A stretch of 64,000 nucleotides of DNA from Lepidodermella squamata (GCA_047495785.1 JBLDXI010000016.1:868001-932000); one strand, 5' to 3'. Positions 30,575 to 60,254 are shown, numbered from the stretch's first letter. Numbers and translations: made by a program. Notes: generated by a model not told the origin, from the sequence alone.

Positions 30575-32542
30575 TTACTCATCGCATAGCTTATCATTCA
30601 TGAAACATCTCTGATATCCGGGGCATTTCTTGGCTCCTTCTTTGCATTCGCTACATCCATCTTCGTCCACAGCATCGCGGCAGTCGGCAAAGCCATCGCA
30701 ATGTTTGTCCAAGGGTATGCATCGGAAGTAACTAGTTCTAACATCGATGCATTTGAATTGTTCCCTGTTGCAGTTTGGGCAGTCTAATTCATCGGTTTCA
30801 TCGGGACAATCGATCAAGCCATCGCATTGTTTATGTTCTAAAATTAGGTATTTTAAGAGAGGTTTAGATTCAGGCAGAAACTTACGATGGATGCAGATGC
30901 TTGAATTTCCGCATTTTACAGGACGATCGCTCGGGCACTGAAAAATCGGGGGAAAAAATCATGGCTTGCCGAAGTTTTTCCAAGTTTATCGGCTCACCTT
31001 TTGGCAGTGAGTTTCATCACTCCGATCATGGCAATCCAACTTCCCATCGCACAAACCCTGAATTGTGCTGAGATGGTCCCATCCAAACCTCGCGTCAAAA
31101 TGCTTCACACATTCGCCATTGTCGCAGCTCAATTGATGGCTCAGGCATGGGCAGTTTTGCAGTTCGTCATTGGAACAATCCCACCGACCATCGCAAACCC
31201 GATTTCTCCGAACGCATGACCCATCTGAGCAGAGAAATGACTCAGAGTTACACGGACAGTTCTGCTCATCGGTTGTGTCTTTCGAGATTTCGTCACAGTC
31301 CGTTATTCCATCGCACTAAAGAATCACAGCTTATCATTTGACCTCATTTTTAGGACATGAAATATACCACTCGGGATCTCGGGATACATCGATCTGAAGT
31401 TGCGCATTTCCTCGCTCCAGATTTGCAAACTAATTTGCCGATTAAAATTGCCTTCTTCATACAAATCACAAAATTCATACAAACCTGTACAATTCGCTTC
31501 ATCGTTACCAAGAACGCAATCGATGATGCCGTCGCACCTTTGAGCCTCGCCGAAGCAATTCTCGTTGCCTGTTGGTATACCATTCAAGCAGAAGTAAGGG
31601 CATCTTGACGGGCAGTCGTTTTCATCTGATCCATCCTTGCAATCGATAATCCTATCACATCGTCCGTTGATGGGAATGCATTGCCCATTGGTTTTACATT
31701 GGAATTGAAACCGTTTGTGGCAGGTTTTACATGACATTTCGTCTGAACCATCTGAGCAATCGTTCTGGCCATTGCAAATGCGACTCGAATCTATGCACTT
31801 CAATCCGTTTTTGCATAGAAACTTTGTCGGGCCGCAATTTGGTGGACTAATGGATACAACGCAATCGCTTTCATCTGAGCCATCAGTGCAGTCGTTAGTC
31901 CCATCGCAAAGCCAGCTTTTGCGGATGCATCTCGATCCATCCTTGCAAGAGAACATCCCATAAGCGCAGGTAACATTCACTCCGGGACATTCCATTTCGT
32001 CAGCTCCATCCGGGCAATCGAAATCTCCGTCGCAGACCCAACCATCGTCGATGCATTTTTTAATACTTTGACATGGGAAGAGATTTCGTCCGCAGTTGAG
32101 CTTTGTCCCTGATGGGCAGCTTAAAGGATTCTCATCTGTCCCACCTGGGCAGTCTAGTTGACCGTCACACAGCCAGGTTTCTTTCACACATTTCGCGACA
32201 GAGCAGTCACAAGCTCCATCACAGCCTGAAAAATCGCTGACTTTAGCGAAAATATGTGATAATTACGCCGAAAAGCATACATCTACAGTTAGTTTCATCC
32301 TGGCCATCAGGGCAATCCGATGCGCCATCACATACGGCTCGTATGGGCAAGCAAGTTGAAGTAGCCTTGCAGAAATATTCATATGGTAGACATTCGGGCG
32401 AGTCACCATCACCTCTCCGTGGTCGTTTGAATTTGCTATTATCTGTATAGTTTTTGTAACGTGAAAGAGCCAAAGCTGTGTAGCAGATTTCAAGCAGAAG
32501 TAATGCCAATACTAAAATCGCGACGTGTCCGGGTTTAGTCAT
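30575..32542 (-). CDS. Secreted LDL-receptor class A repeat protein (roughly a dozen LDLa repeats, multi-exon)
   Basis: Signal peptide then repeated C...C...CDG..DC.DG.DE..C units across GT-AG spliced exons; last repeat incomplete (LCDE*). Confidence 0.88.
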
Positions 32543-35385: not shown

Positions 35386-36864
35386 CTATCGCCTTATCAT
35401 GGAAAATTTAACGATTTCCTCCAAATCGTTCAGCAACAAGTAATCTTCAAGGCATCTCGGCAGGTCCAGACTTTTCACGGCATTTTTTCGGTCCGGAACC
35501 CCGATTGGCAGATTTTCCAGCACTTTTGAACGAGCCAAAGCCTGCAATCGCCGCGGGAAACAGAAATGAAGAAATTCGACCAGGTTTTTGACGGCAGCCA
35601 ATTTCGTCTCGAGTACAATCGAATTCGCAATTTCAGGCCGGCGGCGGTTGGTCTGCGAGCTGGAAATTACTTCACGGTTCAGGGTGTCTAATAGTTTGCT
35701 ACGGTCAAACGAATTTGAAGAGCAAATTTCCAGCAAAAATGATATGATAAAATTAGGCCTTTTCGCGATTGAGAAGTCATTTTTAGCCCGTTCGAAGCAT
35801 TGAAGAAAAGGATTTTTCGATAAAATCGACGAAATTCCAGTTAAATCGCCGGGTAGCACAGCGCCGGCTCGAAGTAGCGGTAGAATTGCGAACGCCATTA
35901 CGCTGTTGAAAATTTGAAAATCCAACATGTACATGAGCAATGGGTCGAAACAAGCCCTGAGAGCCGTGTTCAGTTCCGATTTTGGAGTTGCTGATAGAAA
36001 TAATTCAGCTCCCTCGGCGTCGAACATCATCGCTAGCATGATCGTATTCCGAACTGCATGATCTCGAGGCGATTTTTCGTTAATTTTATAGAAAAATCGA
36101 CATTTTTTCTGGCGATTTTCAAGAATTCTGTCAACAATTTTCGGCTGGTCTGAAATTGATTTGGTCCGATTCTCGAAAATGGAGCTATCAGGTTTTTTCG
36201 CGCCGTTTTTGATCAGGAATTTGAGAATTTGGCTCAAGAACGGCCCGTCAGGCCTTGATGGGAATCGATCTTCGAAGCAGTCGATCACATAACCAACTAA
36301 ACCAGCTTTATCGGTGATTCTCAGGCTGGAATGGGGCGATGCGCCATTTTTCAGCAGAACTTCAAGTCCGGGGAAAAATTGCTGTTGAATCGACAATCGA
36401 ACCAACGAAGTTTTTACGCAGCTTGGAATATCGGACATTTCAGCCAAGATTTTTTCCAAATTTGTCGAATCTTGCTCCATGACGTAGCAGCAGAGTAAAA
36501 TTTCGATTAGAGGACTGAACTGCGATTCGCTGGATTTTTCACGAAATTTCGAAATAATTTCAATAATTATTGGATAGACGCGTTGGTTATGTCGATCGAG
36601 AGGCATTTTGATGACCAGGCGATCGTGTTTAGGCATGTCAAGATGGAGCTCGTGGTCGAATAGAGGTAGTTGTAGCTTCAGAGGCTCGAGATCGATTGTG
36701 TTCGGTTCAGATTCGGGTTCCATTTTTGTCATACTTGCAAGTTGGCCGTTAGTTTTATCAATAATTCTTCGAGCCAGTCTGAATAGCTGCTGATCGTAGC
36801 CACGCGAGGAGAGTTGACATTTTCCACGGCAAATAAACAGCTGATGAATGGGGTTCACAGCCAT
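35386..36864 (-). CDS. SOCS-box protein with degenerate ankyrin-like repeats (ASB-like), single coding exon
   Basis: C-terminal PRRLQALARSKV...LDLPRCLEDYLLL SOCS box; LEVLLKNGASP, FLIKNGA and LLRAGA ankyrin-like helices. Confidence 0.8.
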   Translation of the reverse strand: MAVNPIHQLFICRGKCQLSSRGYDQQLFRLARRIIDKTNGQLASMTKMEPESEPNTIDLEPLKLQLPLFDHELHLDMPKHDRLVIKMPLDRHNQRVYPIIIEIISKFREKSSESQFSPLIEILLCCYVMEQDSTNLEKILAEMSDIPSCVKTSLVRLSIQQQFFPGLEVLLKNGASPHSSLRITDKAGLVGYVIDCFEDRFPSRPDGPFLSQILKFLIKNGAKKPDSSIFENRTKSISDQPKIVDRILENRQKKCRFFYKINEKSPRDHAVRNTIMLAMMFDAEGAELFLSATPKSELNTALRACFDPLLMYMLDFQIFNSVMAFAILPLLRAGAVLPGDLTGISSILSKNPFLQCFERAKNDFSIAKRPNFIISFLLEICSSNSFDRSKLLDTLNREVISSSQTNRRRPEIANSIVLETKLAAVKNLVEFLHFCFPRRLQALARSKVLENLPIGVPDRKNAVKSLDLPRCLEDYLLLNDLEEIVKFSMIRR

Positions 36865-40787: not shown

Positions 40788-41639
40788 ATGGAAAATTCGA
40801 ATTTTGATTTGAAAAGAAGTGTTTATTTCAATGATTTTGCGCGTGATTTTATGGCGGCTGGTCTGGCAACTGTGGCGGCTAAAACTGTAATTTCTCCCGT
40901 AGCGAATTACGTCGAAATGGCAACAGAACTCAGTCAAAACCGTTACATGGCCTACTGGTCCGGAAATGTCCTCAACATCATGCGTGGCGTGCCTATCGAA
41001 GGTTTTACGTTCGCTTTCAACTCGAAATTTCGCGCAGCTCTTCTTCGCCAAACTGACGATGAAATGACAGATTTTCCCCACTCTCCGCAGCGAATTTTCG
41101 CGATTAACCTAGCTGCCGGAGCTTTGGCTGGCGCGACAACTGTAGTTACGCTCTACCCGATGTACTCGGCGTTTGGCGCAAGTTTTTCCGCGACAGATAT
41201 TGGCGAAAAACTGACAAGTCTAACAGATAGTAATTACACGCGAAGTTTTCGAGGCTGGTATCGCGGCTTTTTACCGTCGCTTCAATGCGTGACCGTGTAT
41301 CGAGCGTTTTATTTTGGCCTGTATGAAACGCTGATATCAGCTTTTTCACAGAACAAACTCGACCCGCCTGGGTTTTTCTTCTCATGGGCTATTGCTCAAA
41401 CGACAACGCTAACAGCCAGTTTTATTGCCTATCCTTTTGACATTGTTCGACATCGGCTGTCAGTTAGGTATGGGTCTGGGTTGACGTTGTGGCAATGCTG
41501 GGTCAAAATTTGGCGGAAAAATGGCGTCGCTGGGTTTTATCGCGGGGTCGGCTCGAGTGCAATTCGAACTGTCGGGGCCGCCCTTTTATTACCCATCTAT
41601 GACCTAATTCTTTCTCAAATGCGCAAAGAGGTTCAATAA
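40788..41639 (+). CDS. Second divergent ADP/ATP carrier-like SLC25 protein, intronless
   Basis: DFMAAGLATVAAKT, YWSGNVLNIMR, YRAFYFGLYET, SWAIAQ, YPFDIVR, GFYRG. Confidence 0.85.
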   Translation: MENSNFDLKRSVYFNDFARDFMAAGLATVAAKTVISPVANYVEMATELSQNRYMAYWSGNVLNIMRGVPIEGFTFAFNSKFRAALLRQTDDEMTDFPHSPQRIFAINLAAGALAGATTVVTLYPMYSAFGASFSATDIGEKLTSLTDSNYTRSFRGWYRGFLPSLQCVTVYRAFYFGLYETLISAFSQNKLDPPGFFFSWAIAQTTTLTASFIAYPFDIVRHRLSVRYGSGLTLWQCWVKIWRKNGVAGFYRGVGSSAIRTVGAALLLPIYDLILSQMRKEVQ

Positions 41640-42175
41640 AAATTTCTTATAATTTTTAGTGAGGTTAAAATGCTTTTATTACTTGACAAGCTCGATACAG
41701 AATTTTAATTCAACGAGCATTAGACCACCTGACGAGAGCACGTGCTCTGTCGAGCGGTATTTTCGTAATATGGCGCAGCTAGTTTTCTGAATGAGATGCA
41801 CGTGTTGAAAAAAACAACTGAACCTGCTCACTCGTTTCAGACATTATTCAGGCGATATTATGAACGTGTAATGTTGTCTTGACTTATAATCAGTTTAAAA
41901 TAACAAACACCTGTGGCAAATCTAACTCGACATTTGAAGAGAGAATTCAGTGCTATTCTTTAGAATTTATAGAGACTCCGATCTAATTAATCGATTTTGT
42001 AGCCTCTATATGCCCTGAGGGTTACGGCTCATTTATTCAGAACACTCTAGGTAGATTTTCCCCTCGAATTACCACTCGGCATAGCATATGAATAGCATCG
42101 AAATAGCACCAAAATAACATTGTAGAAATTTTCTCAGATTTATGCGCACCTTGATTTTACGCTTGACTGAACATC

Positions 42176-45100
42176 ATGGATAATATTGATTCTAGTTATT
42201 ATCGAAATTTCTTGCCTATTTGGGTGACTTCAACGCCCGATTTCGCCAAGTACGAATCTGAATCCTTTAAAACTACCGGGCGGCCGAATTTATCAATGGC
42301 CGACTTTTTACGAGCAATCACGAAGCTATTCGAATTGAGTCATGGACCGGTAGACAGCGCCGTTATGGAGCGACTACTCGGCGTCATTTGCCGATCAGGC
42401 GCTTTGACACCGGCCGAATGCCTTCAAATCACTAAAGAAGTCAGTCCTGAAACGCGACTCGAGAAAATGTTTCAAACTCTGGCATTGCATGACGAAATTC
42501 GAAATTTCGATTTTTTAAGGTGGGTTTTTTCATTTTTGTTGACAAATTAATGGCGAAATGTGTATTTCAGGGCTTTGCGAACACATGGAATTCGGGCTTT
42601 GGTTGATGATCATAATTTATTGCCAAAGGCGGACCAGGGCATTGTCGACACGATAACAGAATGCCTCATCGAAAATACAAGGTTTGCAATTTTTTTAATT
42701 TTTACCTGGGGTCCAATCACTTAAAAAATGGCTAAAATTGAGGTTCCAGCGATACATTTTCCCATTTTGTTTCAATTTCCTGATCAATAATGATTCACCC
42801 TGCGGTTTTTTCTTCAGCTTCCTGGTACCGTTAGATAACTATAGGGCTCTGATATCGGATATCGGAAATCACTGCTTTGTAAAATCAAAAATCGATACAG
42901 GAAATCGATATCGACTTTGCTCCACACTCTTAGGGTGTCTAATTGGCACCCTTCAAGATTCAATATGCATTTTTATTTTTTCAAGAATTCCTCGGCTGGG
43001 GAAATTTCCGACTATAAGTGCCGATTTCCGACTACAACGCATCGAACAAAGCGCGATTTATAGTGCTGTTGAAAAATTGTTGGACCAATCTACAAGGCTT
43101 AATACTGGTGAAGAATTTTTCAGGATTATTTCATGATCAATTTCACAATTTTTTTGCTGTAGAAAAAGTTCTGTGGCTAGTTGGGGATGCTGGCCTTGGC
43201 ACCACCTCGCTGGTCACAACTATCGCTTACGATTCGAAATTTCTCGCCGAAAAATGTCGAGTTGCCAGTTTAATTTGGCTCGATATGCAACAACTATCGC
43301 CACCATCTAGCGGAACCCGGGCTTCAAGTAACTCCTTAATCACCGAAATCGGCCGGTTATTGCTTGGCGCCGATCAGGTGACAGCTTTCGGCATTGATAG
43401 CCTGGACCTTGACAGCCCAGCATCGGCCCTGATTAACCAGACTCTTCTCGCGAAAATCAACGATCACATTGCTCGGAATGTATGCCTCCTACCCGATCAG
43501 TCGATATTAATCGTTGTCGACAGTGTTACGGATATCGAAGCCTTGGCCTATGTTATAGCTAATCTAAGTCCTGTAGTTCGTTGCGTCGCGATTTTGAACA
43601 AAAAAGTTGGATTACAGACGGACGAAAAATTGCCGCTAAATTGCATTGAGATTTCGAAAATTCCCGATTCGCAAATGGCTCAAATATTGGAAAAATCATT
43701 GCCGAGTCAAAGCAATGTCCCAAAACTAGCGAAATTATGCAAAGGATCGCCTTTGATTGCTTCGCTGATAAAAAGTAAATTCGAGATTGATAACACGGGA
43801 GGGGACGATTTGATGCAATTCAGCGATGATTCGATCGATTCACTTGCTCTGAAATTGCTGGATTCGATTTTGGTTGGAAATTCGTTTTGGCGATCTTTTC
43901 TACTGTTCGAACCCGGTGAAGCTGTTGATATAGATGATTTAATGCTCATTTGGTATAGACTCGAAATATCTCTGAAAAAATTTGAAATTCGATAGTTTTG
44001 TTTAATAGGAAAGTTGGACGGCCTGAAGCTGAGCGACGTTGCCAGGAGTTTTGTCGAAAATCCCTAATCAGGCCACTTATCGATGGCGAATTTATTTCAT
44101 CCGAATCAACTGACAAAGCTAACAACAAGTTGTTCTGCGTTCACTCGATCGTATTCAACGCTACCCTTCGCCTGGCTGCTAAGCGTCAAAATCTCAACTT
44201 GAATAGGTATATTATTCCGAAAACCAGGAAACTTGAAAGAATTATAATTTTGAGAAATTTGAAAATTGAAATTGAAATTTTCCATTTTATACGAATTTCT
44301 GGAGAACTACAGTTTTCAAGAATTTGCATAATTTTGACAAATTGATAATAATTTTCTCATTAATTATTGATTTTTAGGGAATTTTCTATTAGTGTAATTA
44401 AAAAAGTTGAATTTATATTTAAATTTTTAGTTTTTATCTTTATTTTTAATTTTAGTGAAAATGTTTCTGAAATGCGATGTGCAATGATATCAGCCGCGTT
44501 TATAGCCGAAAACGGAAATATTGAGTCGACCTTCCACGAGGCTCTGCGACTCGGCAGGAAACGACTCTTATCGAAAATCATCGCAATTGTCGAATCAGCC
44601 GATTATTTGTGGCGATTTTCCGAGTGCCAGCTAATCGTCATCAATTTATGCGACTATTTTTTTCAACACGCTTACGGCTTCTTACTCGAAGATCAAAATC
44701 CTCACAACGAATCGCCAATTTTCGAATCGACGTGGTTAGAATTATTCAGCCGATTTGTGAACACCCTGGCTAAGGATGAACGTCGATCATTTGGTATAGT
44801 CAAGTCTTTTGGTCTGATTTGCGCGAGGTCAAAGGTCGCGGAAGCTTTCATCCGCCAATCTTTCGTCTACTCGACATCTTACGATGGTTTTGACTTGGTT
44901 AAAATGTTGATTGAAAGTCAACAAATGGCGCCGTATCGGAAGGGTCTTTTAACCGCGAATGAACCAAGATTCGGGCGAACTGCGTTGGTAATGGCCGCAG
45001 CTCGAGGTTTGCCTGGTTTAACCAGGTTTTTACTCGACTCAGGTGCCCATCCTGGTACTAAGGATGCTCATGGGAAAACAGCGCTAATCATCGCATTGGA

Positions 45101-48100
45101 ACATGGCCATCTCGAGGTAGCAAAAATGTTGTACAAGGAAACCAAAGTTCATCAGCCTAAAAATGGCCACGCTACCCTGATACCCCTAATCAGTGCGGCT
45201 TTGAGTGGAAAATCGGATTTGGTGAAATTTGTGTTGGAGCAGAAGGAATTTGAAATCAACGCCGTGGATGATCATCGAAGGACTGCCCTCATGGCGGCTG
45301 TTTGGAGTCGAAATCCGACAGTTGTTCAACTTATTATCGAAGCTGGTGCGGATTTAAACGCAATTGATGAATTCGGGAAAACTGCCTTAAGGTATTGTAA
45401 TACTTATTCAATCTGGAAAAATACATTTTTTTCTTTTATTACAGCCGAGCAGTTTACGATTCCAATACAGAAATCGTGAAGATTTTACTAGATCGCGGCG
45501 CCGATGTAAATTCGCGCGATAAAAATGGCCGATCGCCTCTAATGTTAGCAGCCAGTGGTGATAACGTGGAAATTCTACGATTAATGCTGCTTCAGAGCAG
45601 CGCTGTTTCGGGCCTGAAAGCTGTTGATAAGCATGGAAGAAGTGCCTTGCAAATCGCTGCTTGGAATGACCAGCTTCCAGCTGTTGAAATGCTTCTCCTG
45701 GCGTGCCCTGCGACTCTCAATTTCAAGGATAATAATGGCGTATCAGCGCTGTAAGTTGAAAATTTTCAATTTATTTTGATTAATTTTTTAATTTTAATTT
45801 TAATTTTTTCGGTAACTAACGACTTGATTATGATTAATTGTTAGTTAATTTTTTAATTGTGATTTTTTATTTATTTTTGCATTTCTTTCTCTAGAATTGC
45901 CGCAACTGAGAAAGGCAACGTTCCTATTATTCGATTGCTGATAGAAAAAGGTGCCGTAGTCGATGCTCAGGATGAAAACGGGCGAACAGGTTTAATGAGA
46001 GCGGCCGAAAACGGCCATCTCGAAACTTGCCAAGTCTTGATACAACTCGGAGCGAATGTCAATAAAACCGACCACTGCGGTCTGACCGCTTTACATCTTG
46101 CTGCCGAGGCTGGGCAGAGCCATGTTGCCAAGGCGCTTCTTGAAAATTACGGCGCTGACCCGGGTTTAGTTGACGAGTGTAACTCGACAATTCTTAAAAC
46201 TGCGTGCGAAAATGGGTTCATCGACATTGCGAAGCTGTTGCTCGCTAGGTCCAAACAGTCACTGATTTCCGTTGCGGATAACTACGGCCGAAATGCGTTG
46301 ATGATGAGTTCTCATCGAGGTATAGCTCGATTTTTTATCTTTTCTCCGAATTCTGATTTTTTTTAAATTGAAATATAGGTGATGTGTTAATGTCAAAGTT
46401 GTTGCTTTCGACGGGTCTCCTAGACATTAATGCGACGACTAATGACGGCCTCACTGCGTTGATGATGGCTGTCAAGAATAACCATATCGCCGCGGTTCAA
46501 TTATTGGTTGAATTTGGTGCGGATATCGAAATGAAGTATCGAAAAACTGGGGCTAGCGCATTAAGTAATTCGATTACACCCATGACCCAAATTGGCCCAA
46601 CATTATTTTTTCAATTTTACAGTTCTGACTGCTTGTTTCGGACACACGATGATTGCTCAGTTTTTGCTGAATAGCGGAGCGAACGTTAATTCGCGGGATA
46701 ATCGTAAGCTATCTTTCAATGGCCATCATTTTTTTAATTGAATTATTTATTAAGGAGGATTCACATCTCTCATGATAGCGGCAAAAAATGGTTGCTCTAA
46801 TCTTGTCAAAATTTTGCTGCAATTTAAGGCCAATCCGATGCTATTCGATGATAGCCACAGGTAAAAGGCTACCGGACCTGAATTTATTCGGAAGGCAACA
46901 AATTTATTATAATATTTTGCATAATCAAGGACTGCCTTGATGCGCGCAGCTTCGAATGGCCACATCTCAGTCATCCAGATGCTTCTGAAATCTTCAGCTA
47001 AAACAGACATCGAATGTCTGATCGACCAAACTGATCAGCGTGGGAAAACTGCTCTCGTTAAAGCTGCTGAAAATGGCCATGTCGCTTCAGGTGAGTCTAT
47101 TTATTGGCTACAAATTCACAACTAATTTTGTGATTTTTTTTCAATTTTCGCAGTGAAAATTTTGCTCTTGTTTGGCGCACGCGACGGCGTATCTTCGGCA
47201 ATCCTATCAGCTGCTTCTAATGGCCATGTCGAAGTGTTAGAGCTGCTCTTCAACTGCGGCCTCGACGCTGATATAATGCCGCAAACATCAATCGACGCGT
47301 TATTCGAAGCGATTCGCAGTGATCAACAACAAGTTGTCGAGTATTTAGTGAAAAAACGCGCAATTGACCCGAATTCGAGAGACAGCGAGGGCAATATTGC
47401 GCTAATAATGGCCGTCGAAGATGGCAACATCGAAATGACCCGGATTCTTGTAGAAAATAGAGCCGATGTGAATTTGAGTGGAAATCATGGATACACCCCA
47501 CTTATCATCGCCGCAAGAGAGGGCCACATTGAAATCGCTAGGTAATTAATTAAAATTAAAATTAAAATTAAAATTAAAATTAAAATTAAAATTAAAATTA
47601 AAATTAAAATTAAAATTAAAATTAAAATTAAAATTAAAATTAAAATTAAAATTAAAATTAAAATTAAAATTAAAATTAAAATGGGATTTTCAGGCTTTTG
47701 ATTCGGAACGGCGCCTCCCTGCACCAGACCGACGAGTTGAAAAATTCGGCTTTAATCGTGGCTGCTAAAAATAGACGCGCGAAAATTGCGAGATTATTAA
47801 TTGACGCTGGGGTGGAGATGAATCATCAAAATGTCTACAAAGAAACAGCTCTTATTGCCGCTGCTCGAAATGAAGACATGGCCCTAGTCCGCCTTTTACT
47901 CGAAAGAGGTGCCAACGTCGACCAGACAGACCAGCATGGCTACAACGCCCTGCTTATCAGCGTGTGGAAGGCGAATAGTTTGATGGCGAAGCTGTTACTC
48001 GATGCCGGTGCTGATATCGAAGCAAAAGATGCCGATGGTTACAACGGACTGATGTTGGCGGTTAAAAATCACGACACCGCAACAGCGCGGATTTTAATCG

Positions 48101-48321
48101 ATCGTGGCATTGATATAAATGCGACGAATACGCATGGTTACACTGCGTTGATGGTGGCGGTTTTGCGGGGTGATTTAGAGGCGGCTGAGCTGTTGCTTCA
48201 AGCTGGAGCGAACCCGGCGATTAGCGATGCGAATGGCCAATGCCCTGCTCAGGTAGCGTCGCGGAAATGCGGCGAAGAGTGGCGTGTGATTTTCAATAAC
48301 TGTAAGCATCACCTTGTCTAA
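42176..48321 (+). CDS. CED-4/Apaf-1-like STAND protein: CARD-like + NB-ARC + ~26 ankyrin repeats (multi-exon)
   Basis: Helical N-terminal domain, ENTRIPR linker, Walker A-like LVGDAGLGTTS, Walker B ILIVVDSV, CKGSPL (GxP), WHD LMLIW...FCVHSI, then G.TAL..AA repeats; junctions from exon 1 into the first ankyrin exon checked in frame. Confidence 0.8.
47545..47682. repeat. (ATTAAA)n microsatellite filling an intron
   Basis: More than 20 perfect hexamer copies between the GT donor (~47542) and AG acceptor (~47693). Confidence 0.97.
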
Positions 48322-48624: not shown

Positions 48625-49327
48625 TTAAAACGGAGTGTTGTTGTCACGAGTGGCGATGTAGGCTGCAATTTCAGGCGACTCGTTGATAGCCTTGGCCAGA
48701 GCAGTTAGTCCTGGAAATTTCTCCCATATTTTCTGGGCATCAACAATTTTGTCCCGCGGTGCAGCGTCGTAAATTTGTGCCAAAAAAGCGTCAGCATAAG
48801 TGTACTAAAATACACAAAAACTCGATAATTTTCAGTTAAAGGAATGAAAAAAAGAGTTGATTTACCCCGTCACCACCGGCAAGGTTTCTACCGCCGTTCT
48901 CTTTGACGCGACGTTCCAAGAAGCCGAGAATGCGAGGAATTAATTCGTCGGTAAGCTGCGTTAACAACTTGGCTTTCTTCTCCGCATCGCTTTCACCATA
49001 AACTTTCCCGAAGAAGTCCAAAAGTTCGCGTAGGCTTTCGAAGGCTTCGTCAGCTCTAGCTGTCTCTTCGGGCGATTTTCCAGCCATACCGGTTACTCGG
49101 CCAACATAGCGGGCAATGGCCCCGCTTTGAACAATGTGAAACGTTTTGCCGTCCTTAGTGACCTCGAGGGCAGGAACTTGGCCCAATGGCATTGTAGCCT
49201 TAATCGTCTTGGTCCATTCCTCGCCGTTGAAACGATGGTCAGTGTAAGGAGTCTTGCTTAGCACGAACATGTAACGAATGACTTCAGCTCGACCGCGGCC
49301 GTTGAAGTAATGTAAAGTGTAGGACAT
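48625..49327 (-). CDS. Glutathione S-transferase, sigma class; exons 49327-48866, 48804-48625
   Basis: [49 protein letters not shown]. Confidence 0.95.
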
Positions 49328-50058
49328 TATCAGCACTTTCTCGAATAGATCTGGTGATCAATTTACTTTGTGGGTAATACTCTGCATATAAACACCGTAA
49401 ATTAGTTAGCTGTAGTGAAAAAGGCGTCGCTCGGCCCGATAACTTGGTTAGTTGGTCATTAAAAGCAAATTATAGGGAGACAATTTTAACGAAGACTGTT
49501 ACTTCATGAGATATGTGCGCACCTATTTCTGAGAAAGCTTATTTTTGAATATTTCGACGCAGAAATAAAATTATATAGATGATCGCCACGTGGTGATTGC
49601 GAAGCAGATCGAGTCACGTGAATATTCATGGTCGCGTGGTTTGGCGAATCGCCATAAGCACTCAACCATCTCAGCTCATCCTCCAAGCTAAGTATGTTGG
49701 TACATCACTCTGACTTCTGGAGTGTGCCAGGACACAAAATTACAGAATTACAATAATTTAGAATGACACCAGTCTTTTTATAGCCACACGGCAGGGCTCT
49801 TTTTGTCATTTAAGTAATACGATTAGCATTGTGGACCGAATTTGTTCCTCCTGTACTTGACACAGCCGCCTTTTACCGAGGCTGACGAAAATCGCACAAG
49901 AGAGTAGAAAATTCACAGGCCCAGGAGGGCAACATGTTTTACTTTAAAGCGGATCGTTTGTTTTTCATTTCTATGAAGACCCAAATCACTGAATTATCTG
50001 AATGAACCAAGCTGAAATTGATAATTTTAAAACCAAATACAAAATTTGGGGAAAACGT

Positions 50059-50581: not shown

Positions 50582-53071
50582 CTAATTGGGAGCATCAGTT
50601 CCAACGGCGATGCTGACGCTACTACTAAGACTGACATCCTTAACCAGACCAATCTTAGACAAACCCATCATTATCGTGCGCCGTTGGAAAAGCACGATCA
50701 GCCCGAAATTACTCGCAAGCGCGTAAGTTGTCATTATCGCGATTAGCCCAACCGGGGACATTTCAAAAACAGCCAACGCAAATGCGCACAGCAGAGCAAT
50801 CGACGCGAGGAAATACAGCGTCAGGGCAATGTTTTTCACCTCCTGATGGCTCAACTCCTCGATAAGAGCTTCGCCGAAATTAACGTGATGAGCATTTGAT
50901 TCACGCTGATTAGCCGCAATGGATAGCCTCGCGACAGAATTGCGTGTGTTATTGGAACTTTTCCGATTCACATTTCGCGAGACGGCGGCGGAATTAGGCG
51001 GACGTCCTCGCTTTTTGAAGGATCCGATAGCTGCGATGACAGACGCAAATAGCAGCAAGCCCTGAAGAGAAACTAGAACGATTGCAGATTTCGGATGGGC
51101 ATCTCCACTGTCGAAGGAACAAATGTACGAATATTCATTGAGTATCGTATCGGAAATTTCGTTGTACGAACTTTTCGTGACAACAATAGATTTCGGCATA
51201 AATTCTGCGAGGTACCATCCTTCAAGTAGACAGGAGTCGACAAACATAAGACTCGAAAAGATTGAATAATGAAGCTTTTCATTCCGATCCTCAGGTCGGT
51301 GCCTGAACCCCCAGAGTTTGAGGAATAAAGCTCCGATCATCGCAGAAAATCCCATAAGAAACAACGGCGGAACACCAATGCAAAAAGTTGAAAGTTTCTC
51401 CTGATCCGAGCTGTCTAAGGGGAATAGAAAAACTGATACCGAAATAGCTGTCGCCCCAAGGGTTGCCAAAAGGTTGAACCAATTGAACGTAGGCGAGGAA
51501 TGCCATGTCAAAAACCCAACCACCCAGTTGAAAAAGACAAAAACTGCCGTAGCGATAATCATGCCCAATACGATGTCTGGTCCTACATGTCTCCTGATGT
51601 CAACTTCCAATGGCTCGGTTAGAGGGGGCCTGCCATCAGGGGTGGCCCATTGCAACGGATTGAGTCGCGTGAAAAATTTGTTGATGTCACTGTTGTAGCG
51701 ATCAAGCTCCCTTGAAACTAGAACAGGCTTTCGAGAGCCCTTCGCAACTTGGAGTGCAACGATTGGAGGGTTTAGACCTTCATCTGTACCGTTGACAAAC
51801 GCATCTCGGCCAAAAACTCCGGAAGTATCAAGTTGTTTCGTGTTCCTCCGAATCAACTCTGTAAGTTCTTCTTTCCGACTCGGATCAGCAATCAGGTCTT
51901 TCAAAGTTTCATTTTGTCGATTCAGCTCTAACTCGGCGTTGTGGAGGATTCGAGCGCCCAGAATGACGTCTTGGAAACAAAAGATTCTCCAAGCATAGGC
52001 ACCCATTCGGCTCGCGAAGTCTGGAACTCGTTTCATCATCAAATCATTGAATTGGCGTAGCGTGAATCCGATCGTGTTCAATGAGTCCATTGGTACGGAA
52101 GTTGCTTGGAAATCAGGCCCGATGTACAGCGAACTTTCCGCAAATTCTTGCAACATCTTACGAGTGCAATTCGGTGGTAGGACCGCCGTATTAGCGACAT
52201 CGATCCAGGAGTTGAACATCCATATGATATGAGGCCCATACAACCCCTGACGGTGAGCTTCGCAAGCCATAGCCGGGCAGAGGTTGACGTAGCAATTGGC
52301 GTAGATGACCCTTACATCGGCAGCTTTCAGCCGGCGCAGCGATTCTGCCGGGTTATCGAAATAGAACTCCTCCGCCGCGATCTTCTTCCCAGCGGCTAGT
52401 TCTGCCTTAGCGAAGTAGATGAAGTCGTCATACGTTGTTTGCACGGCATCAGCGAGGTAACCGATACGGTTCCATCCGACTAGATTCATGATTTTCGCGC
52501 GGAATTTCTCAACCTCGAGGAAGGACGGGGCGAAACGGTAGAAATTTGCGAATCTTTTTCGATTGGTGAACTGAGGTTCCGTGCACCCAACTACAACATT
52601 TATGAACCCATAACTCTGCGGCATTCTTGAGGCAGTTGTGCATGTCGGTGAACAGATACCTCCCAGATAAATCGGAGGGACATACGCTTCACTCGCGAAG
52701 GTTTCGTTCACCGGCAACGATGCAACTCCGAACGTCTTCGAGCTCGGGACGACAGGTTTCAGGTTTTCGTACATGTTTATCGTGGTTTTCAGAGCAGCAA
52801 CTGCTAGGCACTGGTCGTCGGCCATATCAATTTGAATTTTGTAATTCGGAAGGATATCAGGGTTTGCGTTGATAGCGTCCAGAGCGATTGTTGAAGCTTC
52901 CGTGCACATGTTGCCCATCGGGTTAACCGGCCCACCTAGCGGAGCATTCATCGGAATCTTAAGGGTGTATTGCTTATCGGCTATTGTTCCTTTCAAGATC
53001 CCGAGCATCATCACCAGCAACACTTTTCGGCTTAACCAACCCTGGAAAATCTTTGTTTTCAAGCTGCTCAT
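50582..53071 (-). CDS. GABA-B-like class C GPCR, copy 1, intronless
   Basis: Venus flytrap (ALDAINANPDILPNYKI...DDQC, GICSPTC, CEAHRQGLYGP.IIW), W..DG.PP linker without cysteine-rich domain, seven TMs. Confidence 0.9.
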   Translation of the reverse strand: MSSLKTKIFQGWLSRKVLLVMMLGILKGTIADKQYTLKIPMNAPLGGPVNPMGNMCTEASTIALDAINANPDILPNYKIQIDMADDQCLAVAALKTTINMYENLKPVVPSSKTFGVASLPVNETFASEAYVPPIYLGGICSPTCTTASRMPQSYGFINVVVGCTEPQFTNRKRFANFYRFAPSFLEVEKFRAKIMNLVGWNRIGYLADAVQTTYDDFIYFAKAELAAGKKIAAEEFYFDNPAESLRRLKAADVRVIYANCYVNLCPAMACEAHRQGLYGPHIIWMFNSWIDVANTAVLPPNCTRKMLQEFAESSLYIGPDFQATSVPMDSLNTIGFTLRQFNDLMMKRVPDFASRMGAYAWRIFCFQDVILGARILHNAELELNRQNETLKDLIADPSRKEELTELIRRNTKQLDTSGVFGRDAFVNGTDEGLNPPIVALQVAKGSRKPVLVSRELDRYNSDINKFFTRLNPLQWATPDGRPPLTEPLEVDIRRHVGPDIVLGMIIATAVFVFFNWVVGFLTWHSSPTFNWFNLLATLGATAISVSVFLFPLDSSDQEKLSTFCIGVPPLFLMGFSAMIGALFLKLWGFRHRPEDRNEKLHYSIFSSLMFVDSCLLEGWYLAEFMPKSIVVTKSSYNEISDTILNEYSYICSFDSGDAHPKSAIVLVSLQGLLLFASVIAAIGSFKKRGRPPNSAAVSRNVNRKSSNNTRNSVARLSIAANQRESNAHHVNFGEALIEELSHQEVKNIALTLYFLASIALLCAFALAVFEMSPVGLIAIMTTYALASNFGLIVLFQRRTIMMGLSKIGLVKDVSLSSSVSIAVGTDAPN

Positions 53072-53658
53072 GGCTTTAAATTGATAAAATTATAAAGTTA
53101 TGGTCTGGGATTTCAGCAATGTTTCAGTAAATTTAGAAGCCAGCACTCCGATAATGAAAAGCCATAGGAAAATTCGCTGAAAATGTAGCTTTCAATTTTT
53201 GCAAAGTGATATATTTTGGGCTAATTGATCTGAGGAAAAATACCTTGCAGGGTTGTCCCAGACAGCATTAAAAAGTGATTACAGCGAAGCACGGCTGCTG
53301 AATGTAATACGATACTGGCATCGCCTTTCGGATAGAGCATTGACGACAATTCATCAAGTAAATGCGCACTAGGTAAATCAAGTGATTCACAGTACATTTC
53401 TGCTATCAGCCTTTAGTCAACTTTCTAATGGGCTCGAGAGTCCCCTATCGAACGTAAACATTTTACGAATTGACAAAACGGTAATTAAAGAACTTAGGTG
53501 AAAATTTCTTGGACACACTGTATTAACAGATAAAACGGTTCACGGAAAGAAACAGTATTTAGCCTTCGCTCTCGATCATTTCACCGTTTCCGAAAATCTT
53601 GCATCTAATTTCTAGCCGTTGTTGCCTCTACATACAAAACATCGGTTCTGGCCCGGTG

Positions 53659-55974
53659 TCAACATCTCCGATTCGAATTGCCTCTCAACTTGACGCAAGT
53701 TGCGATTGATTCATACAAAAACATCAACATAACTATCAAATTAGTCGCGATTACGTATACAGACGTAACAATAAACAATGCCGAATCACTTGATTGGAAA
53801 CCGGAAAATGCAAAAGACGAGATGAGAACAATAGATACCAGGCCATATACGGTCAACGCATTTCCTTTAGCCAACGCTTGTTCCATGCGATGACTTAGTG
53901 TGGTTTCAGCAATATACGAGAGATTTGATCTGTTTGTCAACCTGCTTGCAGCGGACCTCGGCCGGTCCTTTGTTCGAAAAGATGCGACTGCAAGAATAAC
54001 AGCTGATAGAATCAGACCAGCCTGTAGACACATCAGAGCGATCGCGGAATAGGAAATGTGTGATGTGAAAGAGCATCGATGGACCACCTCGGTGATGTTA
54101 GTGTCATATGCCTCATCGTCCCAAATTGTTCTGATGGCTGTAGCAGTTGGTTTGAATTCGCCGAGGTACCAAGCTTCGATTAGACAAGCATCTGCCATGA
54201 GAATCATGATAAGGAAGCAATAGCCGTAATTCCTATGCTTATTTCCGCCATCAAACTTGATGAGGCAAAGCTTGATAATTAAAGATCCGATTACGATTGA
54301 AAATCCAAACGTCATCAGAGGACCAAGAGCTGTACAGAAAATCGTCAAATTTGACTGGATTGAGTCGTCCCGAGGGTAAGTGAAAACAGAAATCGAACAG
54401 AGGGTCGAGCCGATACAAATCATCGTATTGAGAGTTGCGGACTTATCGATTTTCCGTAACCTCACGATTAATCGAATGGTCCAAACTGCGACTAAGCTAA
54501 TAGCAGTTGAAGTTATCATTGCTGTAAACACCTTGGAGCTCGATTTTTTCAATCGTATGATTTCGACGGGCTCTGTTCTTGGTGGTTTGCCGTCAAAAGT
54601 GGCCCATTTTAGCGGTGATAAAATCTGGAAATACTTTTCTATATTTTCCTCACTTCGATTTCTAGTGATCAGAGCAGTAGATCGGGCTCCTTTCACTTGT
54701 TGCGCAATGACAAGAGGTGGACCAATGGACTCGAACTGTCTATCGACGAATCCAACATCATACAGAAGGCCAGTAGCTTTAATGTTCTCCGTGTTGACTC
54801 GAATCAACTCACGAAGCTCCGAACTTCGGCTTGAATTTGTGATCAAATCTTTGAGTGTTTCATTCTGATTATTCAGTTGAATCTCAACTTTGTGTAGAAC
54901 TGAGGCCGCAATAATGACATCCTCGGCGCATATAAGTCTCCAAGCGTAAGCGTTGTGACGTTCAAATTCAGGAATTTTAGTCCTCATATGATTTAGGAAT
55001 TCGCCTCGAGTTATTCCTATCTCAGTTCGAATATCGTCTGGTCGAGATTCCCCGCTCACATCTTGACCAATATATAGCGAGAACTCAGCAAATTCGAGAA
55101 GTATTTTTCTCGAGCAGCCAGCTGATACAGGAAGATTGGTGAAATCAATCCAGGTGTTGAACATCCAAACATACTTAGGGCCAGAAAGGCCGATTCGGTG
55201 AGCTTCGCAAGCAACTGCCGGGCAGTTATTAAAATAGCAGTTTCCCCAGATTACTCGGACATCGGCTGATTTCAGCCTGGCTAAGGACTCAGTTGGGCTA
55301 TCTACAAAGAACTCCTCAGCTGCAACTTTCTTCCCAGCAGCGAGAGTAGCCCTCATGAAAAAAACAGCATCTTCAGGTGTCGTTTGAACGGCATCAGCTA
55401 AGTATCCGATTTTATTCCAGCCCATGTAGGTCAACAGTTTTGCTCTGAATTTTTCAACCTCAATAAAAGATGGCGCGAAGCGATAGAAATTCGGGTATAG
55501 CTTTCGATTTGTGTAGCGTGGCTCATTGCACCCGATCAGAATATTGATGAAACCGTATTGCTGGGGCAGGCGAGCTGAGACTGAACAAGTAGGGGAGCAA
55601 ATTCCTCCGATGTATATGGGAGGAACATAAGCCACGCTCGATTCAGTGAAATTCTCTGGTACGATCAATGTGCCCAGTACCTGTGAAGCTGGTAGAACTG
55701 GTTTGATATTTTCGTAGATCTGCAGAGACATTTTGGCAGCGGCGGCGGCTGAACACTGATCGTCGCCCAAATCGATTTGAATTTTGTAATTTGGCAGGAA
55801 ATTCGGATTTGAGTTGATTGCTTCGAGAACGAATTTGAGGGCTTCGGTACACATTGGGCCCATAGGGTTGACTCGACCTCCCAATGGCATCGTCATAGGG
55901 ACTTTCAAGACAAAACGCTTTTCGCCAGCTGTGATAGTTGTCAAGACAAGTAGGATAGCTAAGGAAACGTGCAT
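53659..55974 (-). CDS. GABA-B-like class C GPCR, copy 2, intronless
   Basis: Same VFT + 7TM architecture, 771-aa ORF with signal peptide. Confidence 0.9.
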   Translation of the reverse strand: MHVSLAILLVLTTITAGEKRFVLKVPMTMPLGGRVNPMGPMCTEALKFVLEAINSNPNFLPNYKIQIDLGDDQCSAAAAAKMSLQIYENIKPVLPASQVLGTLIVPENFTESSVAYVPPIYIGGICSPTCSVSARLPQQYGFINILIGCNEPRYTNRKLYPNFYRFAPSFIEVEKFRAKLLTYMGWNKIGYLADAVQTTPEDAVFFMRATLAAGKKVAAEEFFVDSPTESLARLKSADVRVIWGNCYFNNCPAVACEAHRIGLSGPKYVWMFNTWIDFTNLPVSAGCSRKILLEFAEFSLYIGQDVSGESRPDDIRTEIGITRGEFLNHMRTKIPEFERHNAYAWRLICAEDVIIAASVLHKVEIQLNNQNETLKDLITNSSRSSELRELIRVNTENIKATGLLYDVGFVDRQFESIGPPLVIAQQVKGARSTALITRNRSEENIEKYFQILSPLKWATFDGKPPRTEPVEIIRLKKSSSKVFTAMITSTAISLVAVWTIRLIVRLRKIDKSATLNTMICIGSTLCSISVFTYPRDDSIQSNLTIFCTALGPLMTFGFSIVIGSLIIKLCLIKFDGGNKHRNYGYCFLIMILMADACLIEAWYLGEFKPTATAIRTIWDDEAYDTNITEVVHRCSFTSHISYSAIALMCLQAGLILSAVILAVASFRTKDRPRSAASRLTNRSNLSYIAETTLSHRMEQALAKGNALTVYGLVSIVLISSFAFSGFQSSDSALFIVTSVYVIATNLIVMLMFLYESIATCVKLRGNSNRRC

Positions 55975-56450
55975 TTTTCGTAGCTATGTCAAGCCATAAT
56001 CATTCCCCATGATGGCTTTAATACTCCGGCTATCAATTATTTCAGTTTCATCGTTCCCGGCATGTGTCGTAGGTGGTTCAAGCATCAGACAGTCGCACGA
56101 CGCATTTGTACTGATATAATTGGCCGAAACTACGTAGACGGTTAGGCTTCCCGTGGGAGTGTGTACTCGATTAACATGCCTTCCTAATTGTAATGGCTCG
56201 AGTTGCATGACTCGGCGGCATACTAGTAACTCATCATTAGGCCTAATGCAATCAGAAATGCGAGAGGCAAGAAGCAGGTAATCAAGGGATTCTCTCCGGT
56301 GTTGAAGGCAGAAACGAGATCTGGGGCCACTGAAAATGCGAAGTCCTAGGGTGTTTTCAGGAGCTGATATCGCTGATATCACTAAAGATACTTTCATTTC
56401 TACGAGAGCGACAGTTTTCTTAGAGAAGGCATAATTACGAAGGCGATCGG

Positions 56451-56685
56451 TGTGGCGAAGCCACCTGTTGAATGTTGAATTTGAAATTGGCGGTCGACCT
56501 TGACCGAACTACTTGGAAGTTTATTGTACCGCCAAATGGCGAATGATGATTGGTCGAATCGTTGTATTTAAACCTTCTGTAAATATTATATTGGGGTTGA
56601 AAAGATTGGAGAAATAAACTAGAGATCGTGATTAACGTGTTTTATTGTTGCCAGTAGAACTACTAGCCTTGGTCTTCTCGCCACA
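56451..56685. mobile_element. Solo LTR, 235 bp, 5-bp TSD ATCGG
   Basis: ATCGG|TGTGGCGA...TCGCCACA|ATCGG; TG...CA inverted termini, internal TATTTAAA and AATAAA. Confidence 0.85.
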
Positions 56686-56950
56686 ATCGGCGATAATCCG
56701 CCTCATATCATGCTGCACTATGCCGTCGGTTGGGAAACTGCTGTGAACTGACGTAGTATGATTCGCATTGTTGCGTGACTCAACTAACATAATTATGCCT
56801 AATTCAACAAGAAAAAAATGGTCCGAATTCGAGTCCTAAATTCAAAGGGGCATCCTCTGATTTCGGACCATATTGTTTCCTGTAACAAAGCAAAAAATTG
56901 AAATTCATTGAATTTATTGGGAACACTGGCAAGAGGCAAGATTCACTATA

Positions 56951-59257
56951 CTATTCACTACAAGGAGCAATATTCTCAGTTTGCGGAAATCTGTGGCCCC
57001 GATCATTTCTTTGTTTCGGATGATCTTTCAACTTATTTTTAACCTTCATTGCTGCGCGAATTTCTTGATGAAACATGAATATTATCATCGCATTAGTCGC
57101 GATCGCATATACCGCTACCACAATAAATAACGAAAATTGATTGGAAACAAAGCCTGATAACGCAAAAGCCGTGATGAAAACGATTGCTGACAATCCATAT
57201 ACCGTGAAGGCATTCCCTTTAGCATCTCGTTCCTTTCGCGTACTCGGCGTCAACACATTAGGCGGTATTTGGTAGTCCTGAATAAATCTACTGATCATCT
57301 TATTTGAAGAACTCTGCTTCTGTGATACATTTTTGCGAAGAGAAATAACTGCAATAATAACAGCTGATAAAATCAGACCAGCCTGTAGACACATCAGAGC
57401 GATCGCGGAATAGGAAATCTGCGATGTGAAAGAGCATCGATTGGCCAACTCGATGACATTAGCGTCGTCAGCGTCATCGTACCAAACTTTCTTCAAAGTG
57501 GTAGCAGTTGGTTTGAACTCGCCAAGGTACCAAGCTTCGATTAGACAAGCATCTGCCATGAGAATCATGGCCAGGAAGCAATATCCGTAATTCCTGTACT
57601 TGTTATCAGCATCAAACTTGATCAGGCAAAGCTTGACAATTAAAGATCCGATTGAGATGGAAAATCCAAACGTGATCAGATGACCAAGGGCTGTACAGAA
57701 GATAGTCAAATTAGGCTGGATTGAGTCATTCAGAGGGTAAGTAAACACAGAAATCGAACTGAGGGTCGAGCCAATACAAATCAGCGTATTGAGAGTTGCG
57801 GACTTTTGGATTCTCCGAAACCTCAAGATTAATCGAATTATCCAAACTGCAGCTAAGCTAATAGCAGTTGAAGCTATCATTCCTGAAATAAGTTTAGGGT
57901 TTGATTGTCCTAATCGCATGATATCGACTGGTTCTGTCCTTGCGGGTTTGGCATCGCGAGTGGCCCATTTTAGCGGTGATAAAATCTCGAAATACCTATC
58001 AATATCATCCACGCTTCGATTTCTTGTGACCAGAGCCGTAAAACGAGTCCCATTTCTCAGTTGTTCGGCAACCATTGGCGGACTAATAGCTTCAAAGTTT
58101 TTATCAACAAATCCTATTTCTTTATCAACAAATCCTATTTCATTAAGTCCAAAAGCTTTGATGTTCTCTGTATTGCTCCGGATCAACTCGCGAAGCTCCA
58201 CGGCTCGACTGGGATTCGCTATCAAATCTTTGAGTGTTTCGTTGTGGCCATTCAGTTGAAGCTCTGTTCGGTGTAAAATGGATCCGGCAATAATAACACC
58301 CTCGGCGCATAGAAGCCTCCAGGCGTAAGCGTTGTGCCGTTCAAAACCAGGAATTTTCGACCTCATATAGGACAAAAATTGACTCCTAGTGAAGCCAATA
58401 TCGGTCGGTGCATCAGCTTGTCGAAATTCCCCGCTCACATCTTGACCGAGGTATATCGATGAATCAGCAAATTCTAGAATCATTTTCCTGCTACAACCAT
58501 TCGGTACTATAGGAGAATTGGTGAAGTCGATCCAGGTGTTAAACATCCATACGATTTTAGGGCCGTAAAGACCGATTCGATGGGCCTCGCAAGCAACTGC
58601 CGGGCAATTGTTGAAATAGCAGTTGCCCCATATTACTCGGACATCAGATGATTTCAGCCTAGCCAGTGAATCAGCAGGGTTATCAACGAAAAACTCTTCA
58701 GCCGCAACCTTCTTCCCAGCAGCTAGAACAGCTCTCATGAAAAACACAGCATCTTCAGGTGTTGATTGAACTGCATCAGCAAGGTAGCCGATTTTATTCC
58801 AACCCATGTACCTTCAGCACAGCCAATCAAAATGTTGATGAAGCCATATTGCTGTGGCAGGCGGGCTGATGTTATACACGTTGGCGAACAGACGCCGCCG
58901 ATATAAAGGGGCGGGACGTAAGCTTCGGCCGATTCACTGAAATTATTGTGTGCCCAGGACCTGTGAAGCTGGTAGAACTGGTATGATGTTTTCGTAGATC
59001 TGAAGAGACATTTTGGCAGCGGCCGCAGCTGAACACTGGTCATCGCCGAAATCGATTTGAATTTTGTAATTTGGCAGGAAATTCGGATTTGAATTGATCG
59101 CGTCGAGAACGAAGCTGACAGCTTCGGTACACATTGGGCCCATTGGGTTGACTCGGCCACCCAGTGGCATTGTCATTGGAATTTTCAGAATGAATGGCTT
59201 ATCAGCTGCTGATTTCGCAGGGATGAGGGAGAGTAAAATTAACGACGCTACGTTCAT
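56951..59257 (-). pseudogene. GABA-B-like GPCR copy 3, disrupted
   Basis: ~14-nt deletion near 58950 gives a TAA at 58943; a second ~91-nt deletion near 58810 removes PRFTNRK...KVLT relative to copy 4; remaining 618 codons open. Confidence 0.85.
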
Positions 59258-60057
59258 TTGATCTGTGTTACCATAATATGTACTGGGACGAAGACTACTC
59301 GAAAAAACATCTTGAAAACAGTCTATATTATCGAGGCGATAAATTATCTATCGTGGAACGTGACGATTTGTTTATATGATTTGAGCACGTAGGTGATGTC
59401 TGAGATAGGATGGGTGAGTGGGATGGAAGTTTTAATTATTGAAGTACCCTTTTATCGTCAGTAGACAAATGAAAAGTGCCAATGTCAGACGTTTACTGAA
59501 TTTTGTTTTCCCCCTGCTATTTTCGATACGTAAATTATCTACTATTACAGAATTTAATCAATTTAAGAAATTCGATATTATCATGAAAAACAAAGTTAGT
59601 TCGTCTTGCGATTTCAAGTCGCAATTTCGCAATGCTAACCGTGATCGGAGTCATATTCGGCGGCCAAGCGTTCCTTGAAGCACCAGTTTTCGTCATTCCA
59701 TCGCGAAATTGATCTGGCCCAGCTGACATGACGCCATGAAGGACAAAGAATTTCGGGTCATTCGCGACTGTGGATATAATGACCTAAATAAAAAAAAATT
59801 AGGTTGAAAGACGAATCCAAGTTGAAATAAACCCTTGGCCAGAATTCTTGGCCAGATTTTTGACAATTTAAGGCTTGTCAATTATGGTGATTTTCGATCA
59901 TCGGCTACAATCTCAAAGTTGGGTCATACTGGGTAGAGCACATGGACAAAATTGATTCCCTGTTTTCTTGAACCTGTTTTCTTGATGTCTGAAATGGTTT
60001 CGTTATTATTTCATCTTTTTTGAATCTAACCGCACACTGTCGCCCACCCCGCGATAT

Positions 60058-60254
60058 CATATCGTTAGCGCCGTTGAGTAACTCGGATTTAGGCTTGTTT
60101 ACACCTGTTTCAAGGTCACGCGTGACAAGTAAAAAGGCGCCTTTTTAACGTGAATAAAAAGGCAACAACAGAACATTTTTTACTTGTCACCTATCAACTT
60201 GAAATACATATAAACAGGCCTGCATCCGAGTTATTCAACGGCGCTAACGATATG
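60058..60254. mobile_element. Palindromic MITE (~197 bp)
   Basis: catatcgttagcgccgttgagtaactcggat...atccgagttattcaacggcgctaacgatatg, with pairing continuing towards the centre. Confidence 0.75.

Follow-up and report, generated by a model that had tools for sequence, protein, structure and literature searches.

Does a gene that joins an Apaf-1-like module to ankyrin repeats encode an apoptosome adaptor, an immune receptor or something else? This question is raised by positions 42176-48321 of a 64,000-nucleotide (nt) stretch of the Lepidodermella squamata genome (GCA_047495785.1 JBLDXI010000016.1:868001-932000), and we refer to that whole stretch as the window. An earlier note on this DNA had proposed that one spliced frame encodes here a relative of Apaf-1 and CED-4, with a CARD-like domain in front and about 26 ankyrin repeats as the sensor instead of WD40 repeats. 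Our analysis showed that the locus is an intact, expressed animal gene, whose product has a helical domain of ~95 amino acids (aa) at the N-terminus, a predicted NB-ARC module of the Apaf-1 type in the center and a solenoid of 26 ankyrin repeats behind. What is distinctive about this gene is the extreme divergence of its NB-ARC, the conservation of NTPase motifs that are dead, and the scarcity of its relatives in public data, which is near total. We favor the explanation that this three-part STAND protein works as a scaffold that does not depend on hydrolysis and that binds a conserved endogenous partner or ligand; we consider this account probable, though by a long way not assured.

The gene model lies on the plus strand at 42176-48321 and consists of 14 exons joined at GT-AG borders in consistent phase, from an ATG at 42176 to a TAA at 48319-48321. 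The coding sequence is an uninterrupted spliced frame of 4782 nt that encodes 1593 aa, or 1553 aa when the start is placed at M41, and it covers exactly the span for which a single spliced frame had been claimed. Intron length lies within 51-71 nt in ten of the 13 cases, and the register of the ankyrin repeats is unbroken over every junction. The exons, with their coordinates in the window, are as follows.

Exon 1, 42176..42519, plus strand: possible 40-aa extension (M1-M41) and most of the N-terminal helical domain (residues 41-114).
Exon 2, 42571..42681, plus strand: last part of the N-terminal helical domain, then one more helix (ALRTHGIRALVDD...ECLIENT).
Exon 3, 42986..43107, plus strand: linker ahead of the P-loop strand (IPRLGKFPTISADFRLQRIEQSAIYSAVEKLL).
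Exon 4, 43163..43952, plus strand: predicted NB-ARC nucleotide-binding domain with helical domain 1, and the first part of the winged helix.
Exon 5, 44009..44206, plus strand: predicted winged-helix domain, in which the conserved His is H501 (FCVHSIV).
Exon 6, 44456..45391, plus strand: HD2-like helical domain (residues ~522-690), after which the ankyrin array begins with four to five repeats (Pfam Ank_2, E 1.7e-24).
Exons 7-10, 45445-45750, 45895-46319, 46379-46564 and 46623-46703, plus strand: ankyrin array.
Exons 11-14, 46755-46860, 46930-47090, 47154-47541 and 47694-48321, plus strand: rest of the ankyrin array and the stop codon.

The last intron (47542-47693) is filled for the most part by a perfect (AAAATT)n microsatellite of ~135 nt at 47548-47682.

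Two public read runs, X1 and X2, cover the stretch, and both were examined over 42150-47540. Run X1 behaved as DNA, with its introns covered and without joints. Run X2, whose label as RNA is a guess, behaved as RNA, with zero depth in the large introns. The contigs of X2 skip 42520-42570, 43108-43162, 44207-44455 and 46320-46378 (51, 55, 249 and 59 nt, all with GT..AG borders), and these four skips are introns 1, 3, 5 and 8 of the gene model. Loose ends of X2 contigs at 46564, 46861/46928 and 47090/47151 read into the adjoining exons and fit the junctions 46564/46623, 46860/46930 and 47090/47154, so that X2 confirms 7 of the 13 introns in total. Included among them is 44206/44456, the junction on which the joining of the two halves of the protein had been proposed to turn: the X2 joint at this place shows that the NB-ARC and ankyrin parts share one transcript and are not the products of separate transcripts. 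An alternative in-phase acceptor for exon 6 at 44378 was ruled out by the X2 joint at 44456 together with the collinearity of the protein with its intronless relative (described below). As for the start of translation, the protein of that relative begins at a Met that aligns with M41 of the window protein (ATG at 42296), and the depth of X2 is ~0 over 42150-42329. For these two reasons the start is in doubt: M41 may be the true one, in which case the 40 residues ahead of it in the model would be untranslated.

The DNA run X1 holds a related copy of the gene, and among the differences listed between this copy and the window, 29 were synonymous, 6 non-synonymous and 5 intronic. This synonymous excess confirms the reading frame and indicates that it is under purifying selection. 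The X1 copy is 90-99% alike over the examined span and shows intron indels, such as a loss of ~20 nt around 44317-44337; it may represent another strain, another haplotype or a duplicated copy. These data bear on the possibility that the model is a decaying gene or an artefact of annotation, made of chance open frames or of exons that belong to separate genes. Such a possibility would account for a central module that lies under every curated sequence threshold and for catalytic motifs that are broken, both of which are described below. But a frame of 4782 nt runs uninterrupted over 14 spliced exons, the contigs are spliced, the differences are biased to synonymous sites, and an intact relative carries these broken motifs as well. 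We therefore regard decay or artefact as exceedingly improbable.

An exhaustive phmmer search of 1.84 billion protein representatives returned a single match, P0001 (1376 aa, 38% identity, E 5e-37), whose 90% cluster holds one further sequence, P0002. Both come from eukaryotic contigs (L001 and L002) in ENA metagenome assemblies, and because genes for Inturned and for a USP-type protease are neighbors of the relative, we take these contigs to be animal. A word-index search with residues 1-480 of P0002 found its own cluster only, a scan of JGI metagenome contigs with alignment A1 gave 585 pattern matches with 0 relatives among them, and tblastn detected no paralogues within the 64-kb window or on L001 and L002. 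From M41 onward, the window protein and the four-exon model of the relative on L001 are collinear throughout, with all 26 repeats matched one-to-one and none gained or lost. Identity between the two proteins is 31% in the N-terminal domain, 32% in the linker, 36% in the nucleotide-binding domain plus helical domain 1, 48% in the winged helix, 34% in the HD2-like domain and 43% in the ankyrin array, which comes to ~40% overall. At the level of exons, exon 1 and its L001 counterpart have 36% identity, exon 3 aligns with L001 exon 3, and exon 5 is 48% identical to its counterpart, collinear and without indels.

The gene of the relative (L001 9350-14140, L002 911-5692) has three N-terminal introns in matching places and no introns from Walker A to the stop codon (4.1 kb), whereas the window gene carries 10 introns over the part that is intronless in the relative, so that the two orthologues differ greatly in their introns. 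For the third intron of the relative's gene, the positions 9926, 9935 and 9944 are all in frame, which leaves its donor ambiguous.

When all pieces of the window gene were searched with Pfam, ankyrin alone passed threshold. The NB-ARC family (PF00931) scored 12 bits (E 0.1-0.12) against a gathering cut-off of 23.5 bits and matched the P-loop strand alone, and NACHT reached E 0.06, likewise on this strand alone and under its cut-off. The module of the relative matched NPHP3_N only, at E 0.0024 and under the cut-off of that family. No STAND protein was found at E<=10 by phmmer and profile searches of the PDB with exon 4, alignment A1 or the segment of helical domain 1 and the winged helix, and a word-index protein search with exon 4 gave no matches. 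A feature search with the language model of the Atlas was also performed with exon 4, and its best clusters were all NB-ARC families, at 0.93-0.96.

The fold of the module was analyzed with a model made by AlphaFold2 (AF2) from residues 1-480 of the relative P0002, in which window exons 4-6 entered as rows of the alignment (A2, a 5-row alignment). This model had a predicted local distance difference test score (pLDDT) of 66, with values <50 in the P-loop region, and a predicted template-modeling score (pTM) of 0.48. A single-sequence AF2 prediction of window exon 4 had a pLDDT of 40 and was unusable. Strands and helices follow one another in the model as expected for a P-loop core, then a helical domain, a winged helix (elements 244-311) and a further domain that is all helical (321-479). 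A Foldseek search against the PDB placed Apaf-1 first (3shf at 1.6e-8, then 3sfz, 1z6t and 5juy, with ~510 aligned columns each), followed by NRC2/NRC1, CED-4, a TPR-STAND protein, ORC/Cdc6, NLRP3 and Dark; the values for Apaf-1, the NRC proteins and CED-4 range from 1e-8 to 1e-5. VIA-align against 48,161 chains gave NRC2 at Z 13.6 (302 residues), CED-4 at 12.0, Dark at 11.4 (281 residues) and Apaf-1 at 10.3 (305 residues). A shape search of the ESM Atlas returned bacterial AfsR/TPR NB-ARC proteins and plant NB-ARC receptors at template-modeling (TM) scores of ~0.5. The winged-helix elements 244-311 fall within the alignments to Apaf-1, NRC2 and Dark. The HD2-like region, all helical at model residues 321-479, is taken in by the ~510 columns of Foldseek, whereas VIA-align stops at residue 363, and matches among helices are unspecific. 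As to the NACHT-LRR class, Pfam found no leucine-rich repeats (LRRs), and NLRP3 and NAIP stood below NB-ARC proteins in Foldseek. Taken together, three independent structure searches concur on NB-ARC, which supports the assignment of the central module, as modeled, to an NB-ARC STAND fold of the type seen in Apaf-1 and plant NLRs. The proposal of a STAND NTPase-type center thus agrees with the matches to Apaf-1, NRC2, CED-4 and Dark.

The motifs of the nucleotide site proved to be a mixture of kept and lost elements. Walker A, for which the standard pattern is GxxxxGK[ST], is degenerate: it reads GDAGLGTTS in the window protein (200-208) and GNPGQGTTT in the relative, so that the Lys is replaced by Thr (T206) in both. 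In the X1 copy, the codons of T206 and T207 in this degenerate P-loop carry only synonymous changes. The Walker B-like strand is SILIVVDSV in the window protein (306-314) and SILIVIDSV in the relative, with the first Asp alone kept and a Ser in place of the second acid. The sensor-1 Arg (TTR) was not found in either protein, and the corresponding strand reads AILNKK in the window protein and GICNSS in the relative. On the other hand, the GxP motif of helical domain 1, CKGSPLIA (385-392), is invariant in the relative, as are the winged-helix His motif FCVHSIV (498-504; CVHS) and, except for S437, which is Ala, the approach to the winged helix, FWRSFLLFEPGEAVDIDDLM. These positions were taken from the order of secondary structure in the model and from the established order of NB-ARC motifs, and it is by position that we infer the equivalence of CKGSPLIA and FCVHSIV to GxP and to the His of MHD or LHD. 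Of the NB-ARC motifs reported in the earlier note, GxP, the Walker B-like strand and the winged-helix His are present, but the note missed that Walker A lacks its Lys, Walker B its second acid and the sensor-1 strand its Arg, and that these losses are conserved.

That structural landmarks were kept while catalytic residues were lost, both across ~60% sequence divergence, is the signature of a pseudo-NTPase scaffold and not of decay. Read from sequence, these losses argue against hydrolysis and against a classical apoptosome that would be driven by nucleotide.

The N-terminal domain covers residues 41 to ~135, is helical, and has 31-36% identity with the relative. An intron position after 'DFL' is common to the two genes, and the next two introns, ahead of the linker exon and ahead of the P-loop strand, correspond in the protein alignment. 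By eye, and on pattern only, the segment has about six helices with a CARD-like spacing. Pfam at E<=10 assigned no family to the N-terminal domain of either orthologue, and a PDB profile search with alignment A3 found no death-fold chain. Atlas features for exon 1 of the window gene were weak, with a best value of 0.81 and two CARD-bearing clusters at 0.78, and those for exon 1 of the relative pointed to unrelated and mutually inconsistent families; the queries were exon-level pieces of a domain that spans an intron. The CARD identity of this domain is unproven, and the earlier assignment was not upheld by any of these searches. What stood of the proposed Apaf-1/CED-4 relative was an NB-ARC fold fused to about 26 ankyrin repeats in the place of WD40.

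This bears directly on the possibility that the protein is a true apoptosome adaptor, the equivalent of Apaf-1 or CED-4 in this lineage, in which a divergent CARD would recruit a CARD caspase and ankyrin repeats would stand in for WD40. Apaf-1 was indeed the best Foldseek match and the sole family aligned over all four subdomains (~510 columns). In size the N-terminal domain matches a death fold, and by eye it has a six-helix pattern; it is conserved in the relative, and for the window exon 1 it drew the two CARD-bearing clusters. However, no CARD was detected by Pfam in either orthologue or by the PDB profile search, and the Atlas families for exon 1 of the orthologue are inconsistent with one another. 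Furthermore, the residues by which Apaf-1 binds and exchanges nucleotide are lost, and conserved as lost, and a plant NLR outranks the apoptosome proteins in VIA-align. We consider such an adaptor quite unlikely. A related idea takes the loss of the nucleotide site into account: the protein might replace Apaf-1 in this lineage as a death-fold-headed, nucleotide-independent apoptosome whose ankyrin repeats would sense a conserved endogenous death signal other than cytochrome c. We think this still less likely.

Between residues 693 and 1561 the protein carries 26 ankyrin repeats, in agreement with the ~26 reported before. A hidden Markov model (HMM) built from the protein's own repeats finds 25 units, and one more unit fills the gap at residues 1296-1330. 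Pfam Ank families matched the ankyrin-bearing pieces at E 1e-8 to 1e-40, and no WD40 propeller was found anywhere in the protein by the Pfam scan, so the sensor is of ankyrin type. We compared the repeats with those of the relative position by position. At positions 5, 13 and 14 of the concave face, 46-62% of the repeats were identical between the two proteins, whereas at positions 17-22, 25, 26 and 30 of helix 2 and the back, 4-38% were identical. As weak evidence, this pattern would fit a face that contacts a conserved binding partner better than one that serves as a diversifying sensor of pathogens.

Another possibility is an NLR-like innate immune receptor. Here the ankyrin repeats would sense a pathogen molecule, or the protein would be a sensor with a degenerate P-loop that is paired with a helper whose P-loop is intact, as in plant paired NLRs. 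In plants, some of the sensor NLRs that act together with helpers typically have such a degenerate P-loop. The architecture of the window protein is NLR-like, and coral NB-ARC/NACHT-ankyrin proteins with death-fold heads are described (PMC4083563). Yet the gene is the sole one of its kind in the 64-kb window, without a tandem cluster, all 26 repeats match one-to-one those of a relative that is only ~40% identical, the listed differences from the X1 copy number 29 synonymous against 6 non-synonymous, and the concave-face positions are more conserved than those of the back. The collinearity of the repeats, the synonymous bias and the conservation of the concave face speak for a conserved partner and not for an arms race, and we hold the immune receptor to be unlikely.

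The hydrolysis-independent scaffold, which we prefer, could work in the following way. The NB-ARC would not be an ATP-hydrolyzing switch. The ankyrin solenoid would bind a conserved endogenous partner or ligand and would probably keep the NB-ARC closed, and engagement of the partner might open the NB-ARC scaffold or cause it to oligomerize. The N-terminal domains, once clustered, might recruit a downstream partner through homotypic or adaptor contacts. Several points weigh against this account. The TM-scores of the model to known structures are low (0.2-0.36), which we attribute to a different placement of the subdomains. The model itself is of moderate quality, as given by its pLDDT and pTM and by the low values in the P-loop, and was built from the sequence of the relative instead of the window protein's own. 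A missing Walker A Lys does not establish that nucleotide binding was lost. Finally, the contrast among ankyrin positions comes from two sequences only, and ankyrin repeats in general are semi-conserved at positions 13 and 14.

How does this protein compare with established systems? Its modeled order of nucleotide-binding domain, helical domain 1, winged helix and a further, HD2-like helical domain is that of Apaf-1 (mouse 3sfz/3shf, human 1z6t/5juy), Dark and CED-4, and as in Apaf-1, a small N-terminal helical domain stands in front and a repeat sensor behind. Unlike Apaf-1 and Dark, the window protein has ankyrin repeats for WD40, lacks the Walker A Lys, the second Walker B acid and the sensor-1 Arg, and has an N-terminal domain in which a CARD is undemonstrated; its sequence similarity to Apaf-1, Dark and CED-4 is under the detection of HMMER. 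With plant NLRs (tomato NRC2 8rfh, NRC1 8bv0/6s2p, ZAR1 6j5t) it has in common the NB-ARC fold, GxP and the winged-helix His, at Foldseek values of 1e-7 to 1e-6. It differs from them in that the gene is animal, ankyrin repeats replace LRRs, there is an extra HD2-like domain, the head is neither CC nor TIR, and the P-loop is degenerate.

The exchange of WD40 for ankyrin is by itself not new. Fungal NLRs that combine NB-ARC or NACHT with ankyrin repeats are established. Among animals, corals are described to have NACHT/NB-ARC proteins whose heads are CARD, DED or Death domains and whose tails are LRR, TPR, ankyrin or WD40 repeats (PMC4083563, citing Hamada et al. 2013). In amphioxus, sea urchin and Nematostella, the heads of Apaf-1 homologues are DD, DED or TIR, and TPR replaces WD40 (PMC2246300), and a placozoan genome has 39 NB-ARC genes (PMC6321704). 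The suggestion in the earlier note of an undescribed animal architecture was thus overstated, given that shuffled NACHT/NB-ARC proteins are known (PMC2246300, PMC4083563). The STAND proteins of corals, placozoans and other invertebrates belong to the same class as the window protein, with death-fold-like heads and ankyrin, TPR or WD40 tails. On a comparison by description only, they differ in that the invertebrate NB-ARC is found by standard Pfam/InterPro searches, whereas the window NB-ARC fails those searches and has dead NTPase motifs. The window protein is thus an unusual form of a receptor class that is known already; that it forms a new apoptosome is not proven.

These data present an animal NB-ARC protein so diverged that curated sequence models missed it, although purifying selection acts on it, it is transcribed, and a distant relative matches it in each repeat. 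This shows that standard domain searches undercount NLR-like genes in small invertebrate genomes. The conserved loss of three NTPase residues would offer a natural test of STAND signaling in animals without nucleotide hydrolysis, as in some plant sensor NLRs. If the front domain were a CARD, the sensor of an apoptosome would be swappable for ankyrin repeats.

The gene has unrelated neighbors and is flanked by an apparently intronless mitochondrial carrier gene at 40788-41639 (plus strand; Mito_carr, E 2e-27) and by a GST-like gene at 48836-49336 (minus strand; GST_N, E 2e-7). The neighbors at the locus of the relative (Inturned, USP and MFS) are different, with no shared synteny. Other genes in the window, of the class C G-protein-coupled receptor, Cys-loop receptor, SOCS-box and LDLa kinds, mark the DNA as that of an animal. 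Further along the window, four large open reading frames (ORFs) lie in tandem on the minus strand over 50582-62867 (50582-53071, 53659-55974, 56951-58807 and 60510-62867). An ANF_receptor domain (E ~1e-21) was found in three of the four, one of which also has 7tm_3, and the third ORF had no Pfam match; from these domains, the group looks like a tandem array of class C G-protein-coupled receptor-like genes. Two ORFs for Cys-loop channels (Neur_chan_LBD) are at 18894-20057 (plus strand, E 4e-22) and 29300-30484 (minus strand, E 1e-7). A 492-aa ORF at 35386-36864 (minus strand) has a SOCS box at its end and no other recognized domain, and a 287-aa ORF at 31324-32187 (minus strand) contains four LDL-receptor class A repeats.

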